Shown: positions 7,499 through 56,581 of the stretch, piece by piece
How positions within the stretch are numbered: the stretch's first letter is position 1
How the letters are laid out: each line of letters starts with the position of its first letter
Source of the DNA: Ylistrum balloti
Lineage: Eukaryota
Direction of reading: 5' to 3'
NCBI RefSeq assembly: GCF_031769215.1
Contig: NW_026782115.1
Location: forward strand, 682,001 to 746,000
Length of the DNA: 64,000 bases
Made by a program: the position numbers and the translations under genes
The notes under the pieces: generated by a model
What the model saw: the letters and a program-made list of their open reading frames with translations, nothing else
The model's database searches: none
Told to the model about the DNA's origin: nothing

Positions 7499-7918
7499 NN
7501 NNNNNNNNNNNNNNNNNNNNNNNNNNNNNNNNNNNNNNNNNNNNNNNNNNNNNNNNNNNNNNNNNNNNNNNNNNNNNNNNNNNNNNNNNNNNNNNNNNNN
7601 NNNNNNNNNNNNNNNNNNNNNNNNNNNNNNNNNNNNNNNNNNNNNNNNNNNNNNNNNNNNNNNNNNNNNNNNNNNNNNNNNNNNNNNNNNNNNNNNNNNN
7701 NNNNNNNNNNNNNNNNNNNNNNNNNNNNNNNNNNNNNNNNNNNNNNNNNNNNNNNNNNNNNNNNNNNNNNNNNNNNNNNNNNNNNNNNNNNNNNNNNNNN
7801 NNNNNNNNNNNNNNNNNNNNNNNNNNNNNNNNNNNNNNNNNNNNNNNNNNNNNNNNNNNNNNNNNNNNNNNNNNNNNNNNNNNNNNNNNNNNNNNNNNNN
7901 NNNNNNNNNNNNNNNNNN
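7499..7918. other. Assembly gap (N run)
   Basis: Run of N. Confidence 0.99.
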
Positions 7919-12503: not shown

Positions 12504-12575
12504 GGGGATATAGCTCAGTGGTAGAGCATTCGACTGCAGATCGAGAGGTCCCTGGTTCGAACCCGGGTGTCCCCT
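12504..12575 (+). tRNA. trnC-GCA: tRNA-Cys (GCA)
   Basis: GGGGATATAGCTCAGTGGTAGAGCATTCGACTGCAGATCGAGAGGTCCCTGGTTCGAACCCGGGTGTCCCCT, 72 nt. Acceptor stem GGGGATA/TGTCCCC, anticodon GCA at 12536-12538, intact box A and box B, no intron. Confidence 0.98.
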
Positions 12576-13829: not shown

Positions 13830-13835
13830 TTTATT
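13830..13835 (-). promoter_or_regulatory. Polyadenylation signal AAUAAA of the SNF/U1A gene
   Basis: AATAAA on the minus strand, followed about 20 nt later by a GU-rich tract (tgtttattgttgttttt, 13815-13799). Implies a 3' UTR of about 840 nt. Confidence 0.7.
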
Positions 13836-13866
13836 AGTACATTTGTGATTCCAGTGTCATCTGTTC

Positions 13867-14246
13867 ATTACCAGACAGCCCTAACAGAAGTGCAAGGCCA
13901 GGGACATCTGGTAATATCCAGTACAACACAACCACCAAATACAACAACAGAACTGGCCTGGTGCAATGCCAGTAGTCAACAAGAAAACAGCCTGTGTGCA
14001 ATGCTGTATAGTGACAGCGATACCTGTTTAATCGTAGCACAGAGACCACAGTGAAACTTCCTTAGAGCAGGATACAAAAGAATACGGTGTATTAATCATA
14101 ACACATGCTGTTAACACCCATTCCGTTTTTGGATGAAATTGTTACTGGTCATCAAAATACATATCAAAATAAACAGGTTTCACTGCACAAAACAAATAAG
14201 ATACAAAAAAAATAAATGGATACAACCAGCTGAAGTGCAATGCTGG
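13867..14246 (-). promoter_or_regulatory. Array of U1 snRNA stem-loop II-like hairpins in the SNF/U1A 3' UTR (putative autoregulatory element)
   Basis: mRNA sense: CCAGC-AUUGCACUUCA-GCUGG (14246-14226); ACAGC-AUUGCACACAG-GCUGU (14007-13987); ACUGGC-AUUGCACCAG-GCCAGU (13973-13952); and a long stem with loop CUUGCACUUCU (13915-13867). Confidence 0.8.
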
Positions 14247-14377
14247 ATCGACTAACTTAATATATTGACAATTTTGAATGATGTATAAAAAGAATGATAA
14301 GAAATTGCATTATGATCATGATATGGGAAAGATTTCTTGTATAAAGACTTCATCTGCATCTTTATATGACCATTTGA

Positions 14378-14485
14378 ATGTAGTAATGTCATTACTTTTT
14401 GTATGTAGCAATGTCATTACTTTTTGTATGTAGCAATGTCATTACTTTTGTATGTAGTAATGTCATTACCTTTTGTATGTCATTA
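14378..14485. repeat. 24-25 bp tandem repeat, four copies plus a partial, in the SNF/U1A 3' UTR
   Basis: Unit atgtag(t/c)aatgtcattac(t/c)ttttgt at 14378, 14403, 14428 and 14452. Confidence 0.95.
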
Positions 14486-14653
14486 ATAAGTCTGGTCAAT
14501 TCAATATTTAATCTCAACATTTCTATGAAGAAAATCAATTTGGAATAATATTTGCACAGAGCAATGATCATGATTTCCTGGACACACCCCTCGCATCTAA
14601 CACATTCATGCACACATGAAAAACACACCAAAGACAGCACCATGTTATATTGT

Positions 14654-14813
14654 CTACTTCTTGGCGAATGAGATTTTCATGGCATTGCTAGGCGTGATCT
14701 TGAAGCCCTGTAGGGCATCCTTAGCAGCAGCAGATTGAACCTCATTTTCAAATTCAACGAAAGCAATGTCATGTCGACCAGGCACCAATCGCACTTCCTT
14801 GAATCCAGGAAAT
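14654..14813 (-). CDS. SNRPA: SNF/U1A coding exon 6 (RRM2 C-terminus, stop)
   Basis: [55 protein letters not shown]. Confidence 0.96.
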
Positions 14814-17800
14814 CTACAAGGAGAAACAAAACATGAATTGTCTTTTTATATTAATATATCATCAATCTTAACAGTTATTTTCACATCATTCAAACAATGA
14901 GGAAGGTGAGAAATTAGCTTCATCTTTTCTCTTTAAGCATAATCAGATGTTGGAAATACATCAGATATTACTATATTATACATATGTTGAATGGGTTTGA
15001 GGTTAACATGTGTTATGTTTAACAAGAGGACTAAACTGTTGTCTGAGGCCAAAGGAAACAGTGTGGTCTGCAGGTTCAGCATAAAACATCCAGTCTACAC
15101 ATGTTTTGTTATACCTCTATCACTGACATCTAAGAGAACGAATCATTACAGATATATATAAAGATGATGGCAGAAATTGTCAAGTAATAACCGGAGAGTA
15201 CAGCACAGTAATGAGCTGTGATGTAAGCAGTCAACATCGAGAAGTTGACAGGTAACCATTGTCATTGGGCAAACATCTAGAATTTCAGGCTTTATTCACT
15301 ATAGAAAAGTATAGGAAATGAATAGTATGGTGTAACAAAATATAATGTTCAATACAGAAAAACATATGGAAATTATTCCATCTGTTTGCTAATACTTTTC
15401 ATTCTGAAACATCAAAACTATGACCGCAGAAAATTTGTTTGAATATGTATCCTGCCATACAATATACATTGTGACTTAGTAACTGGAAAATTAATCTTTA
15501 GCATAAATTATTATAATATTATATTATTTTATTAATAAATTAAGTATTTTGAAACATATACCGAACAATCCTATGTAAGTTACGTACTGATTAAACAACA
15601 TGGACAACATCATTTCATTGGTTTCCTCAGGCAGGTTTGTTAAGAACAAGATCTGGTTGGGTGGTTGTTCAGGAATAGCTGTAGGAGCTGGGGCTGCAGC
15701 GGCTGCTGGTGCTGCTGCTGCTGTAGAAAGAAAAACTCACATTAAACAGGCAAACAGAATCAAATCATTCTTAGGTGAGATCACAACCAACCCATCTTAT
15801 ATTGAAGAAGGCTACCTGGCAGTAGTTTCTTCAGAGTATGCTCCTGACTACCTAAAATATGACAACTCGTGAGTGACAGAACATGTCTACTTTTCGTTAA
15901 GACTCTTCAGATTTAATGAGAAGGACTTTTGACTTCTGCAACTGCTACAAATATTACAAAAAAGTGAAAAGGTCAGCTTGAAGATTTGTCACACATATAA
16001 GGATCTCAAATATCATTTACTAAAAGACTGTCACAATCTACACCCTGTATTTCATATGTTACTACTTTTTGTACTACTCTAACCACCAACATCATTCAAT
16101 ATCAGTGACACTTCCACAAACAAAACAGACCAGTTCTATGAATACTTACCTGGCTGTACTTGTGGTGCCATCGGCGCGACTTGTTGTACTTGATTCAAAA
16201 CTGGGGCAGCTGCTTGTCTGTTGGAACACGGAAAGAAAGATCATTATCCAACATTATGTACAGGTACAATGTTTTAACTTCTAAACTATCACTTATATTT
16301 ATCTTATTGCCAAAATAGCATTCAAATATTTATCTGCATTGTAGCATTGGAAAAATTAATATTTTATCAATTCCCAAATTTTGCAATTTACATCGGATAA
16401 CTTCCTTCCTGATTCAACAATTTTATTCCTAAAATGAGGCTAAAATGCTTCATCCCAAACTAGTGAAAAAAGACTGACTTGTATCAAGACTTTAACAACT
16501 GTGAAAGATCAATGGTATATTATGAATGATTGTCTTTTGTAAATAAAGTTTAAGTACAGTTACAATGAAATCCTGATACAAAATCTCAATGACATCTTAC
16601 TTTTGTGCTGCATTCTTTTTCTTAGATTTTTTGGCTACCTCTCCCTCCTCTTCCTTCTTTCTTTTTGGGCGCTCCACAAAAGTGCCTTTTATTTTAGCAA
16701 TGATGTCCGAGTCTTTCTTAGAATATTGAATTCTCTACAAGAAAAATGTACCAAGTGAATCAAGCTGATCAGCTATGTAAATGATCTTTGTTTCTGCAGT
16801 CCTTAAAAAAAACCTAAAATATAGGTACATTTATGTTTCTTTATGTTACATCTCTACATTTTTTATTTAATTAAAATCTAATACTGATTCCGTTCTTTAC
16901 AAACATCTGAATAAAACCAATTAAATTTTTAATAGTTAGTGTGAATTTTTTGAAGATTAATGTTTAATATTTACATAACAAAATGCATTAACGTGCCATC
17001 AGATATACTTCTCGTTATATCTAAACTCTCAGAAGTATTTCGAAAAACAAATGGCACAGTCTATGAACAGATCTGTAACGTCAAAGCTCAAGTTTTCACC
17101 ATTATAATATACCACCTAAGCTTAGAGTGTTGAACAGTTTGAACGACACCACCAAGCTCTCAGAGCACCGGGCAGTAGAGACTGTATCATCATAAATTTT
17201 ACCATTGGTTTGTCATAGAAAGGGAATCCCTGCATTGATCTTATAGCATTGGTGGCACTGCTAATATCCTTAAATATAACAAACGCTTGTCCTCGCATCT
17301 TCAGTGTCTTCATAGCTACAATGTCTAGGATTTGTCCAAATTGGGAGAATATGGCATACAGTGATTTCTTCAGGTCTGAAAAACCGAAATAAAAAGGTAA
17401 ATGCAATTTTCCTTAAATTTGTTTTGTCAATCAATTTCTGTCTCTTGATATTTTATGAAAATTCATTGTCCATAAAAAATTAATCTACACTGCTGTGAGG
17501 AAAAAAAAAATGCAATTATTAAGTACTTCACAACAAATTATTTGAACCATTTGACTGTTCATATCGAGAAATGCCTATTCTTACTTTCTGACAAGTGTTA
17601 AAGCTTACTATCTGCAGCTAAAAGTAAAAAATTTTCCCAATTTATAAGTATTAAACACTTACAAATCATTCTCAATCTATCATAAACAGTAACAATAGAA
17701 ACATACAAGTTTATTCAAGTTTTCAACTTTTCTACCTTAAACAGAAGTAAGCTTATCATGGATTCAATGTGAACTAATGGTATGATGAAAACCAACATTT

Positions 17801-18203
17801 ATGAATACATTGAATGGTATATCTTTTTTTGTTTACTGAATTTATTAGTTTCATATTCAATTGACAATTTGACAAATGTAACAAATATTTTAATCAAATT
17901 GAATTAACTGTTTACTGACTTGGTATGAAAGAAGAATTTGTGATAATGCACTATTAATTAGAATCAGAAAAGACTAAGAAGCAAAATAAATTCTAAAAAC
18001 AATATTATAGCAAAATCTCTCAATGTGAAACTCCCTGGACATGGTCAATGGCAGTGAAGTGATTTGTCCTTAATTCCTCAATCATCAATTGTCTACTGCA
18101 TGCAAACGTTGCTGATTTCACTTTGATAGTAATACTTACCATCTTTCTTGATTTTTTCATTCAGGTTGTTAATGTAGATGGTTTGATTCGGGCGAATATC
18201 CAT
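14654..18203 (-). CDS. SNRPA: U1A/U2B''/SNF family snRNP protein (two RRMs), 243 aa, 6 coding exons
   Basis: complement(join(18140-18203, 17203-17375, 16601-16734, 16150-16217, 15588-15720, 14654-14813)) = 732 nt. All introns are GT-AG with consistent phases (1,0,2,1,2). Translation begins [57 protein letters not shown] and ends [50 protein letters not shown]...KISFAKK*. Equivalent to Drosophila snf. Confidence 0.97.
15588..15720 (-). CDS. SNRPA: SNF/U1A coding exon 5
   Basis: [44 protein letters not shown]. Splice sites ctacag| and |gtacgt. Confidence 0.95.
16150..16217 (-). CDS. SNRPA: SNF/U1A coding exon 4 (linker)
   Basis: [22 protein letters not shown]. Splice sites caacag| and |gtaagt; phases bridge exons 3 and 5. 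Confidence 0.9.
16601..16734 (-). CDS. SNRPA: SNF/U1A coding exon 3
   Basis: [44 protein letters not shown]. Splice sites ttgtag| and |gtaaga. Confidence 0.95.
17203..17375 (-). CDS. SNRPA: SNF/U1A coding exon 2
   Basis: [15 protein letters not shown]...RGQAFVIF (RNP1)...FPFYDKPM. Splice sites ttcag| and |gtaaaa. Confidence 0.97.
18140..18203 (-). CDS. SNRPA: SNF/U1A coding exon 1
   Basis: [21 protein letters not shown] (RNP2). Acceptor upstream at 18209-18210, donor G|gtaagt. Confidence 0.96.
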
Positions 18204-20627: not shown

Positions 20628-23600
20628 TTCCGTGTTCCTGTCCACATCATAACGGAGCGGAAATGTTTGTGATTTTTACTTATCAAAGGTGACACTAATA
20701 CCTGTGGACTTCTGTACAAGTCTGCCATAAAAATATTCTTTCTTTATTTTGTATTCGTACCAGTCTAATCTAATATAAATTAACATGGCGGTAGTTGAAA
20801 AATAAGAATATAGATTTCCATATCTTTGTCTTATTTACTATAAGTTCTTATCGGGAATAAACGCTTATTAACGTTTAATAAAGTCTTACAGAACGTGGTA
20901 GGGGAGTTAACTCTAGCAACCTTAACAAAATTTCCACGTGGTTATTGTGAATAGGTTTCGTAGTTTCCCGTCATATTAGTGTTTTAGGTAAATTAAATCT
21001 GAAATGATGGCGTGTCTTCGTATCAGATGATCCAGAAAAGTGTTCTGAATAAGACTCCTTTAGAATTTTATGTCCTCTTTTTCTCCTAAACTATGTACAT
21101 TGTTACCGTTACCTTCGATAACTTGTACTAACCGAATACACCCTACACTCTTAAGATGTCGTTTTAATGTCTATCTTTGTCTCCAGATTCGTCTGAGGGA
21201 TCTATGTTATGTGGTTAATACATTTTACAAGTCTGAGTATGTATGGTACAAGTATATAGTATACTACTTTCACCCGGGACCGAGGATGTGTATGACACGG
21301 AAGTGTTAAGTATTGCACTGAAACTTAAATACGTTAAGGCCTTTATTTATGGTAAAAACGCAATAAGCCCACACGGAACTATATTGTTTTAACTGATCTT
21401 ATTATAAAGTAGTAGAAAAAGACCGCATAGTATTTTCAATGATCCCTTACGTAGATGAAGGTAAAAAGACAGGTAAATGAACTCAGGTGAAATCTATAGT
21501 TAAACTGAAACTGACTGTAATTGGTTTTCTATTGTCTTCCTAAAACAACACCTTTCTTTGTTTCAAAAAATGGGCAAATCGGGAACATCCTCCTACGATA
21601 TAGTTACTAACGGAAGGCTGTTTGACTTCGTGTCAACAAGATTGAAAAAAAAGATCCGGGGATGAAGACAACTCACCGAAAGGACAAGAATAATGTAAAA
21701 CTATATGTAAATAAAACAGAAATGCACTACAGTGTTAATATACGGCAATCACTGCATAAAAAACGTCAGTCACCTACAGTTACCAAGACTATGTATGTCA
21801 CAGAATATATAGGAATAGTATCGGTCATAAATAATATTGTTCTCGTTGCAAGCAGGGATATCAATATTTAATTATTTTTTTCTCAAAAAGGAAAACAAAA
21901 TTATGATTAAAACACCAACGTTTTATACGTGTTTGGTATCACCTTTAAATGTGACGTCATACAAGTTCGACACCATAAGCTGAGGTTTCGCGCACCACAG
22001 TTGAGACTGTGAATGGATGAAGCACTTCAGTTGTTTCATGGTCAGTTTTACAGCTTTTAACTTACAGGTCTTGATTGTAATAAAGAAAACACATTTAATT
22101 TTTAAGTATATAGATAGACTTCACACACGTGACACATGTTTTCACTTGTTGGTGCATATATGATATTAAACAGAATATTCAACGTAACGCCATGAAATGC
22201 CAATGTCTATATATGTTGAAATTAAACTATCAACATTGATAATGATATATAGCAATGCATTATGACTTGATACAAGGCAAAAATTCCTTGATAGAAAGAC
22301 GTACTTACTTAAATCATGCACACATTTAGCAGGGCAGTGAATACAAATACAGTATATTTTGAAATCAAAATGATTGATCGCATTTTGATACGAATTTGCA
22401 TAAGAAATACTTAACACAAGAAACTAGAAAACACATGTAATGTTTGCCCATCACGTAATCATTCATCTGTAGTCCGGCGACGAGGTAGGTTTAAGTGACA
22501 TCTAGCAGTTTAAATCTCACCCATTTGATAAAAATACCCCCACTGTTATAATCACAACGTAAAGGAGTTGTTCAAATCTGTTTTACAATAAAATCCCGGA
22601 GACGACACAAAAGCACTTCACTGTTTACATGCTCGGTAAAAAAAGAAGAATGTCTGGTTGTATTTGCTCTGTACATTAATAAAGCGTAAAGTGACGAATG
22701 GATGTTTGAAAGGTATAGTAGTGTTCAGTTTTGTTTTACATCTGCAATGTCTACATTCAATATGTAGTGTATGTCGTTTGCACTTTACATAGGTACAAAA
22801 AAGAAGAAGGAAAAAAGAAAAAACAGCAGGGAGTGGAATATTTGATATAAGTTATTCGAAGATAAAGTAAACTTTATGACAAGTGCTGTATTAGTATTTA
22901 TAAGGAACTTAAGAGTATTACATTGAATCAGGCAATTTTGGCTCATTCACTCACAAATCGGATTTCAATATTAGGACTGAAGTGATTAGTATACAGAGGG
23001 TAATACTGACTCAGACGTTTGATTTTTGGCACCTCTTGCTATGTACTGGAGAATGTTCTTTTGACAACCAGATAAAACCTTACTGAGGAGTAGTCGGAAG
23101 TGAAGGTGCTGATCAGAACGAGTTTGTGTTTCGGATATATAACAAGTAAGTTATTTCTTTTCTTATTAGAAATATAGTTGTGTAATGTGAGTGAAACATA
23201 CATGTACATCAACGTTATTTATTTACTTATTTATATCTGACTGTGTGCTACATTGTGTACGACATCATCACAATATTCTATCTATACATATGTGTAACAC
23301 GTTATGAATACAAGAATGATACGCTTCTATATTATTTTACTTAGGAATCGTTTACGAGAATCTGTTAGTATTTTATTGATAATGAATCTGTTTAGAATAA
23401 TATTTTCAGGGTCACCTATTAATTTGTAGATACTTGGAATCGACTATAAGTCCATACATGGCACATATTTACGATATACTAATATACAAGATGATAAGAG
23501 TCATTATTAAAATTATCTTAGAGATATTCCTATATCTTCAAAATGGCTTAAAGGGGAAAAACTGCAATAATACTCAATGAGGACTAGACCCGAATCATAT

Positions 23601-52085: not shown

Positions 52086-52448
52086 NNNNNNNNNNNNNNN
52101 NNNNNNNNNNNNNNNNNNNNNNNNNNNNNNNNNNNNNNNNNNNNNNNNNNNNNNNNNNNNNNNNNNNNNNNNNNNNNNNNNNNNNNNNNNNNNNNNNNNN
52201 NNNNNNNNNNNNNNNNNNNNNNNNNNNNNNNNNNNNNNNNNNNNNNNNNNNNNNNNNNNNNNNNNNNNNNNNNNNNNNNNNNNNNNNNNNNNNNNNNNNN
52301 NNNNNNNNNNNNNNNNNNNNNNNNNNNNNNNNNNNNNNNNNNNNNNNNNNNNNNNNNNNNNNNNNNNNNNNNNNNNNNNNNNNNNNNNNNNNNNNNNNNN
52401 NNNNNNNNNNNNNNNNNNNNNNNNNNNNNNNNNNNNNNNNNNNNNNNN
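52086..52448. other. Assembly gap (N run)
   Basis: Run of N. Confidence 0.99.
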
Positions 52449-56402: not shown

Positions 56403-56581
56403 NNNNNNNNNNNNNNNNNNNNNNNNNNNNNNNNNNNNNNNNNNNNNNNNNNNNNNNNNNNNNNNNNNNNNNNNNNNNNNNNNNNNNNNNNNNNNNNNNN
56501 NNNNNNNNNNNNNNNNNNNNNNNNNNNNNNNNNNNNNNNNNNNNNNNNNNNNNNNNNNNNNNNNNNNNNNNNNNNNNNNNN
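56403..56581. other. Assembly gap (N run)
   Basis: Run of N. Confidence 0.99.

Follow-up and report, generated by a model that had tools for sequence, protein, structure and literature searches.

The SNF/U1A gene of the scallop Ylistrum balloti carries, in its 3' untranslated region (UTR), three copies of the heptamer AUUGCAC, each presented in the loop of a small hairpin. We estimate a probability of roughly 0.7 that these hairpins are sites for RRM1 of SNF in its own message and mediate negative feedback. In the proposed circuit, the three hairpins (HP1-HP3) would mimic stem-loop II of U1 snRNA and in this way offer sites to RRM1 of SNF/U1A, the protein that this very mRNA encodes. SNF in excess of what is taken up into U1 and U2 snRNPs would occupy these sites on its own pre-mRNA or mRNA, and occupancy of the message would lower SNF output, closing a negative feedback loop. 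The comparative data support the view that the snf gene senses its own protein through a hairpin array of this kind.

The host gene and its 3' UTR hairpins

Six coding exons on the minus strand give a spliced SNF/U1A translation of 243 aa. The predicted protein is 99.6% identical to the database entry 'U1 small nuclear ribonucleoprotein A-like isoform X2 [Ylistrum balloti]' and 95-97% identical to its counterparts in Pecten, Argopecten and Mizuhopecten, and its RRM1 matches the PDB structures of Drosophila SNF and human U1A with E ~1e-29. Judged by these similarities, the host gene is the single SNF/U1A/U2B'' orthologue. The features of the gene and of its UTR are as follows, with all coordinates given in the window, i.e., the whole 64-kb stretch of DNA that was analysed.

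14654 to 18203, minus strand: SNF/U1A/U2B'' coding region, in six exons (18203-18140, 17375-17203, 16734-16601, 16217-16150, 15720-15588 and 14813-14654)
14656 to 14654, minus strand: SNF/U1A stop codon TAG, directly after the coding end of the last exon
13836 to 14653, minus strand: SNF/U1A 3' UTR from stop codon to poly(A) signal, its length deduced from the conserved AAUAAA together with L014, an RNA contig of the Argopecten orthologue
14226 to 14246, minus strand: HP1, stem CCAGC/GCUGG, 11-nt loop AUUGCACUUCA, C-G closing pair
13987 to 14007, minus strand: HP2, stem ACAGC/GCUGU, 11-nt loop AUUGCACACAG, C-G closing pair
13952 to 13973, minus strand: HP3, stem ACUGGC/GCCAGU, 10-nt loop AUUGCACCAG, C-G closing pair
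13866 to 13916, minus strand: HP4, a long hairpin with inner stem CCCUGGC/GUUAGGG and C-G-closed 11-nt loop CUUGCACUUCU, bearing the variant CUUGCAC at 13896-13890
13830 to 13835, minus strand: poly(A) signal AAUAAA, within AATAAATGTAAAAC, kept in Ylistrum, Pecten, Mizuhopecten and Argopecten

Database isoform X2 of Ylistrum has 242 aa, one alanine fewer than the 243-aa gene model. At the acceptor of exon 5 (15720-15729, minus strand) the sequence reads ACAG up to the splice boundary and continues with CAGCAGCAG; taken together, the length difference and this sequence fit the use of an alternative NAGNAG tandem acceptor.

On the mRNA (minus) strand, AUUGCAC is found at 14241-14235, 14002-13996 and 13967-13961, all within the SNF/U1A 3' UTR and exactly where an initial sequence-only reading of this DNA had placed its three copies. 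That reading had also described each heptamer as occupying the 5' edge of a loop of 10-11 nt, with a C-G pair closing the loop on a stem of 5-6 bp, which holds in 3/3 cases, and had held that the stems differ in sequence and yet keep their pairing, a point borne out by the extracted stems and by their folds. Indeed, RNAfold returns all three. The starts of the HP1 and HP2 heptamers are 239 nt apart, HP2 and HP3 are separated by 35 nt, and the three hairpins, with each box in its own terminal loop, spread over 295 nt at a distance of 130-400 nt from AAUAAA. The nearest canonical site to the poly(A) signal is HP3, the heptamer of which starts 132 nt upstream of it.

The determinants of U1A binding to stem-loop II are documented: in the complex, A1 stacks on the closing C-G pair, the G of which is contacted by Arg52, and the 3' bases of the loop matter little (PMC2203988). 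When tested for the features of a U1 stem-loop II-type site, HP1-HP3 each proved to have a loop of about 10 nt beginning with AUUGCAC and a C-G closing pair (3/3). The assignment to this type made in the sequence-only reading therefore agrees with the documented requirements, namely a C-G pair and a loop whose 5' edge is formed by the heptamer (PMC2203988). Moreover, the KMRGQAF segment that contains Arg52 is conserved in the scallop protein. Like stem-loop II of U1 snRNA, the scallop hairpins have a C-G-closed loop of 10-11 nt starting with AUUGCAC on a short stem. Unlike it, their loops end in UUCA, ACAG and CAG, versus UCC in human U1, their stems are mutually unrelated, and the element lies in an mRNA rather than an snRNA. 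The invariant parts are the paired C, the AUUGCAC and the pairing G, and the variable parts are the loop's 3' end and the sequence of the stem, a pattern that coincides with the way in which U1A RRM1 reads stem-loop II.

HP4, the 3' end of which lies 30 nt before AAUAAA, presents CUUGCAC in place of the canonical heptamer. An A1-to-C change weakens the binding of human U1A by about 5 kcal/mol (PMC2203988). HP4 is thus a weak or doubtful candidate, although it may constitute a fourth site for SNF RRM1. Three other interpretations of sequences in this region were considered and rejected. As a pre-miRNA, HP4, with its length of 51 nt, has as its sole support a mir-8 match that scores 16 bits where 47 would be the threshold. 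AUUGCAC is also the seed of the miR-25/92 family; the match is irrelevant here, having the same sense as the miRNA and not that of a target. Finally, a 5' splice-site-like 'U1 site', of the sort that cooperates with the vertebrate PIE, was sought in the CAGGU upstream of HP2, which is a poor match and, by eye in the scallop alignment, a non-conserved one.

In the window as a whole, which includes four runs of N (1623-1755, 7499-7918, 52086-52448 and 56403-56581; 1095 bases in all), ATTGCAC is not enriched: counting both strands, 12 copies were found versus 10.52 +/- 3.4 expected. With the window-wide count at the level of chance, the signal lies in the local cluster and in its structural context. 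The count was compatible with a cluster that arose by chance or is a functionless, neutral remnant, whether of local duplication or of a U1 snRNA-derived fragment. Two further observations would fit such an origin: the spacing of HP2 and HP3 could reflect a duplication, and the short hairpins fold no better than shuffles, with unremarkable single-sequence z-scores of -1 to -2. However, three same-strand, C-G-closed copies in about 280 nt are very improbable at a density of 12 per 128 kb, and the mutually different stems of HP1-HP3 exclude recent U1-derived copies.

The nine copies elsewhere in the 64 kb match exactly the estimate of about nine in the sequence-only reading. No stem-loop context had been noticed around these; this stands for eight of the nine and fails for the copy at 21312-21318 (plus strand), which sits in a comparable hairpin, UUAAGU / AUUGCACUGAA / ACUUAA (21306-21328), with a U-A closing pair and an A/U-rich stem. 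This hairpin, upstream of snf and on the opposite strand, is not matched by the covariance model R1 described below and is probably due to chance.

Conservation and recurrence of the sites

To compare the 3' UTR among scallops, we aligned the Ylistrum sequence with its counterparts from Pecten maximus, Mizuhopecten yessoensis and Argopecten irradians. Over most of its length the UTR can hardly be aligned. The islands of conservation are the first ~70 nt, HP1, CAGUGAAACCUGU (14173-14185, minus strand, between HP1 and HP2) and the block from HP2 to the poly(A) signal. HP2, HP3 and the CUUGCAC hairpin are kept in all three other scallops; HP1 is exact in Pecten and Argopecten, and in Mizuhopecten its loop reads AUUGCAU. 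In HP3, a U-A pair of Ylistrum is replaced by C-G in the other scallops, a compensatory change that is accompanied by G-C/G-U variation. The scallop loops keep the heptamer and vary in their last 3-4 bases, and the HP4 loop likewise keeps CUUGCAC in 4/4 species and varies in its 3' part. The positions of HP3 and HP4 relative to AAUAAA are also conserved among scallops. Because conservation extends over the entire HP2-to-AAUAAA block, with its linkers, the scallops alone do not single out the hairpins.

Transcript evidence for the hairpins comes from Argopecten and from the environmental contigs described below. The Logan contig that matches the Argopecten UTR (L014) runs through HP1-HP3 and into HP4, where the contig ends; it represents spliced RNA, since its 243-aa CDS is uninterrupted. 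Transcripts that end upstream of the hairpins had been named beforehand as evidence that would tell against the proposal; the Argopecten contig instead places HP1-HP3 inside the mRNA of that scallop.

Several other features of the scallop locus were recorded. A 25-nt tandem repeat in the snf 3' UTR (14373-14480, with the mRNA on the minus strand; 4.4 copies, 94% matches) is a Ylistrum-specific insertion in the four-scallop alignment. About 40 nt 3' of the stop codon, UGUGUGCAUGAAUGUGUUAGA (14596-14616, minus strand) is kept in 4/4 scallops; it includes UGCAUG, which we take to be an RBFOX-type motif, and may be a separate regulatory site in this UTR. A tRNA gene (67.5 bits) lies at window positions 12504-12575 on the plus strand, opposite to that of snf and ~1.3 kb downstream of its poly(A) signal. 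Mizuhopecten (L016) and Argopecten (L017) each have a tRNA of equal score in the same relative place and orientation, and the linkage is therefore conserved in scallops.

Beyond the scallops, comparable sites were found in the snf 3' UTRs of other named invertebrates. Oyster contigs, the last exon of which is identical to that of Saccostrea, have four hairpins with C followed by AUUGCAC at +93, +262, +290 and +322 after the stop codon and a poly(A) signal at +365, so that 43 nt separate the last site from the signal. Mytilus edulis has three sites (+898, +930 and +995; poly(A) signal at +1035), as does Haliotis rufescens (+284, +311 and +339; poly(A) signal at +394), and the annelid Owenia fusiformis has five, all in C-G-closed 10-nt loops. 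The stems of the oyster, mussel, abalone and Owenia sites are unrelated to those of the scallops. In the wasp Nasonia, no ATTGCAC was found anywhere in 6.9 kb, and the UTR is ~150 nt long. The named sample consists of molluscs, one annelid and one insect.

Two side observations concern these loci. In both abalone (L018, 1-186) and Owenia (L020, 1-720), snf has a divergently oriented Vps26 gene 2-3 kb upstream, an arrangement that hints at old synteny. In the oyster contigs L011 (~694) and L013 (~746), GCUGG / AAUUGCACCC / CCAGC occurs about 1 kb upstream of the stop codon, before the last exon. It lies in an apparent Ala/Pro-rich coding exon, the scallop exon has no counterpart, and the element is probably a coincidence.

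An independent sample was obtained by scanning JGI metagenome contigs. This yielded 80 SNF-like loci, mostly on spliced metatranscriptome contigs, which were reduced to 46 groups with <90% nucleotide identity to each other. Over these 46 environmental groups ATTGCAC is distributed as follows.

Sense strand, 3' UTR: 41 copies in 27.1 kb
CDS plus 5' UTR: 0 copies in 54.8 kb
Antisense strand: 6 copies in 81.9 kb

The count in the sense 3' UTRs corresponds to a Poisson P of ~5e-42. A C directly precedes the heptamer at 38 of the 41 sites, and a stem of at least 4 bp is present at 54% of them, versus 9.7% when the flanks are shuffled (P ~2e-12). Nearly all sites are in contigs at least 66% identical to named animal proteins, and half of the 46 groups have no sites. 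One contig, L024, has lophotrochozoans as its closest named relatives, at 76-78% identity only.

A MAFFT alignment of 26 named-species hairpins (A2) placed length differences on the 3' side and left the stems out of register; it was set aside, and A3 and the model-based alignment A4 were used in its place. The covariance model R1 was built from A3, which comprises 13 hairpins with 10-nt loops. A search with R1 of both strands of 291 kb gave 60 matches at E <= 1, of which 60/60 are on the snf sense strand and 57/60 in 3' UTRs; within the window it recovers HP1-HP3 only (26.7 bits for HP1, 32.6 bits for HP3). In the alignment of the R1 matches, the closing C-G is present in 52/52 distinct sequences, 88% of cells are paired, and several pair types occur at four inner pairs. 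The covariation proposed as a check in the sequence-only reading is seen here, with a score of 0.65 versus 0.20 for shuffled sequences and 0.05-0.15 for controls with the 3' partners slid by 1-3 columns, on an alignment that was fitted to the model and so leans towards structure; the shuffled-flank test has no such bias.

The loop-plus-stem pattern, whose lack of conservation in related species the sequence-only reading had named as grounds for refutation, is thus kept in four scallops with compensatory changes and recurs in oyster, mussel, abalone, an annelid and many environmental transcripts, probably of marine animals. According to the alignments, purifying and compensatory selection has acted on these predicted sites in molluscs and in an annelid. 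The conservation in scallops, the independent recurrence in other phyla and the statistics of the environmental set also bear on the chance or remnant origin raised above, which on these sequence data we regard as effectively refuted.

The same data speak to the identity of the binding protein. RBPMS-family proteins are reported to bind paired GCAC motifs (PMC5311487), and each of our sites includes a GCAC and the sites are clustered. The heptamers could therefore be sites for a protein of the RBPMS/MEC-8/Couch-potato family, or for some other trans factor, with no relation to SNF. We consider this very unlikely. It is the whole C+AUUGCAC octamer that is invariant, beyond GCAC, and the closing C-G pair, present without exception, and the heptamer's position on the loop's 5' edge are determinants specific to U1A/SNF. 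Moreover, R1 finds no further copy in the 64 kb, and the element is tied to snf orthologues across phyla. Binding of SNF to its own message would be the simplest reading of this association. Negative autoregulation in scallops is, in our view, likely, and self-regulation of the U1A type very probably extends well outside the vertebrates.

Comparison with the vertebrate PIE and the regulated step

Autoregulation of U1A through the PIE is a textbook case in which an RNA-binding protein controls its own 3'-end formation. As described in PMC6884704 and PMC2874999, two U1A molecules bound on the vertebrate 3' UTR inhibit poly(A) polymerase; the PIE is credited to Boelens et al. 1993, as cited in PMC6884704, and is Rfam family RF00460. 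The scallop element shares with the PIE its location in the 3' UTR of the mRNA of a U1A-family gene itself, where both precede the poly(A) signal and have the sense orientation. In both there are multiple AUUGCAC/AUUGUAC boxes, each directly 3' of a C in a C-G pair (3/3 in the scallop), and both mimic stem-loop II of U1, with the presumed logic that free protein in excess would bind the very message that encodes it. Moreover, HP2 has the CAGC...GCUG stem that flanks the first PIE box of the Rfam consensus. In contrast, the PIE has two boxes, placed in the internal loops of a single structure of ~50 nt at a distance of about 20 nt from AUUAAA, whereas the scallop has three separate terminal-loop hairpins plus the variant hairpin close to AAUAAA. 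The host protein differs as well, being the single invertebrate SNF of U1 and U2 snRNPs and not a dedicated U1A.

The Rfam U1A_PIE model aligns to HP2 only in the scallop element, with 17.6 bits and E = 1.8, where the threshold is 50 bits. None of 20 related loci (16 invertebrate or environmental lineages) yields a match that reaches this threshold, and the abalone cluster yields no match at E <= 10. The scallop element is therefore PIE-like in its proposed working but not a member of RF00460 as defined. Other invertebrates present the boxes differently. The abalone cluster (Haliotis, L018) forms a single fold of -45.3 kcal/mol (z = -6.0), in which boxes 1 and 3 are opposed on the two sides of an internal loop and the terminal loop holds box 2, a nested arrangement reminiscent of the vertebrate PIE. 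In the environmental contigs L035, L041 and L045, the majority of boxes come after the 3' strand of a small hairpin, reading AUUGCACUCC, an internal-loop presentation like that of PIE box 2. All four have the same boxes, C followed by AUUGCAC, in their snf 3' UTRs as the scallops, where the presentation is in simple terminal loops. The 'non-vertebrate architecture' put forward in the sequence-only reading therefore describes the scallops, with separate hairpins below the Rfam PIE threshold, and does not extend to these nested or internal-loop forms. The same reading knew of no such element in protostome snf genes, and this was upheld: full-text searches, with a coverage largely outside subscription journals, returned PIE descriptions for vertebrate or mammalian U1A only and no invertebrate element. 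The proposed mollusc and annelid variant of U1A autoregulation is apparently undescribed.

By analogy with the PIE, the regulated step may be 3'-end processing or polyadenylation, a proposal that we make tentatively and at somewhat less than even odds. A role at the poly(A) site is suggested by the position of the last site, canonical or variant, which in the named molluscs lies 40-61 nt upstream of the poly(A) signal. Support is lessened because the nearest scallop site is the CUUGCAC variant and because the spacing elsewhere, in the environmental contigs, ranges from 19 to 428 nt; with distances so heterogeneous, a PIE-like distance rule is not general. In addition, there are lineages with one site only, whereas in vertebrates two U1A molecules must be bound for inhibition. 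The segment of the human U1A linker that follows RRM1 is implicated in the inhibition of poly(A) polymerase, and the post-RRM1 linker segment of the scallop protein aligns to residues 103-113 of human U1A with partial similarity only.

SNF might also bind the hairpins for a purpose other than polyadenylation feedback, such as cytoplasmic translational repression or decay, nuclear retention, buffering of free SNF or co-translational snRNP assembly. The variable spacing, the single-site lineages and the remoteness of the canonical scallop sites from AAUAAA are all in keeping with a role of this sort, as is the retention of sites in mature transcripts, with poly(A)-tailed contigs in the environmental set including them. 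However, the distance of 40-61 nt between last site and poly(A) signal in the named molluscs points the other way, as does the sole characterised precedent, the vertebrate PIE, which acts on poly(A) polymerase (PMC6884704, PMC2874999). We consider a role separate from polyadenylation unlikely.

Origin and significance

Self-recognition through stem-loop II mimics in the 3' UTR could be ancestral to at least the Lophotrochozoa and possibly to the Bilateria, in which case the PIE would be a compacted derivative of an older hairpin array, and insects such as Nasonia would have lost the element. We regard this history as possible and lean against it at present. If it is true, nested forms like the abalone element would show how one architecture is converted into the other.

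At the least, conserved predicted self-binding sites are present in the single SNF gene of invertebrates, in at least molluscs and an annelid, and their architectures range from separate hairpins to nested clusters and internal loops. This would move the circuit's origin far outside the vertebrates, or else the circuit would have been invented repeatedly. These genes offer natural variants for asking how the number, spacing and affinity of sites set the gain of the feedback, and it becomes testable whether the inhibition of poly(A) polymerase is ancestral. For the annotation of the element in invertebrate genomes, AUUGCAC preceded by a paired C in the 3' UTR of snf may also serve as a simple and specific signature.
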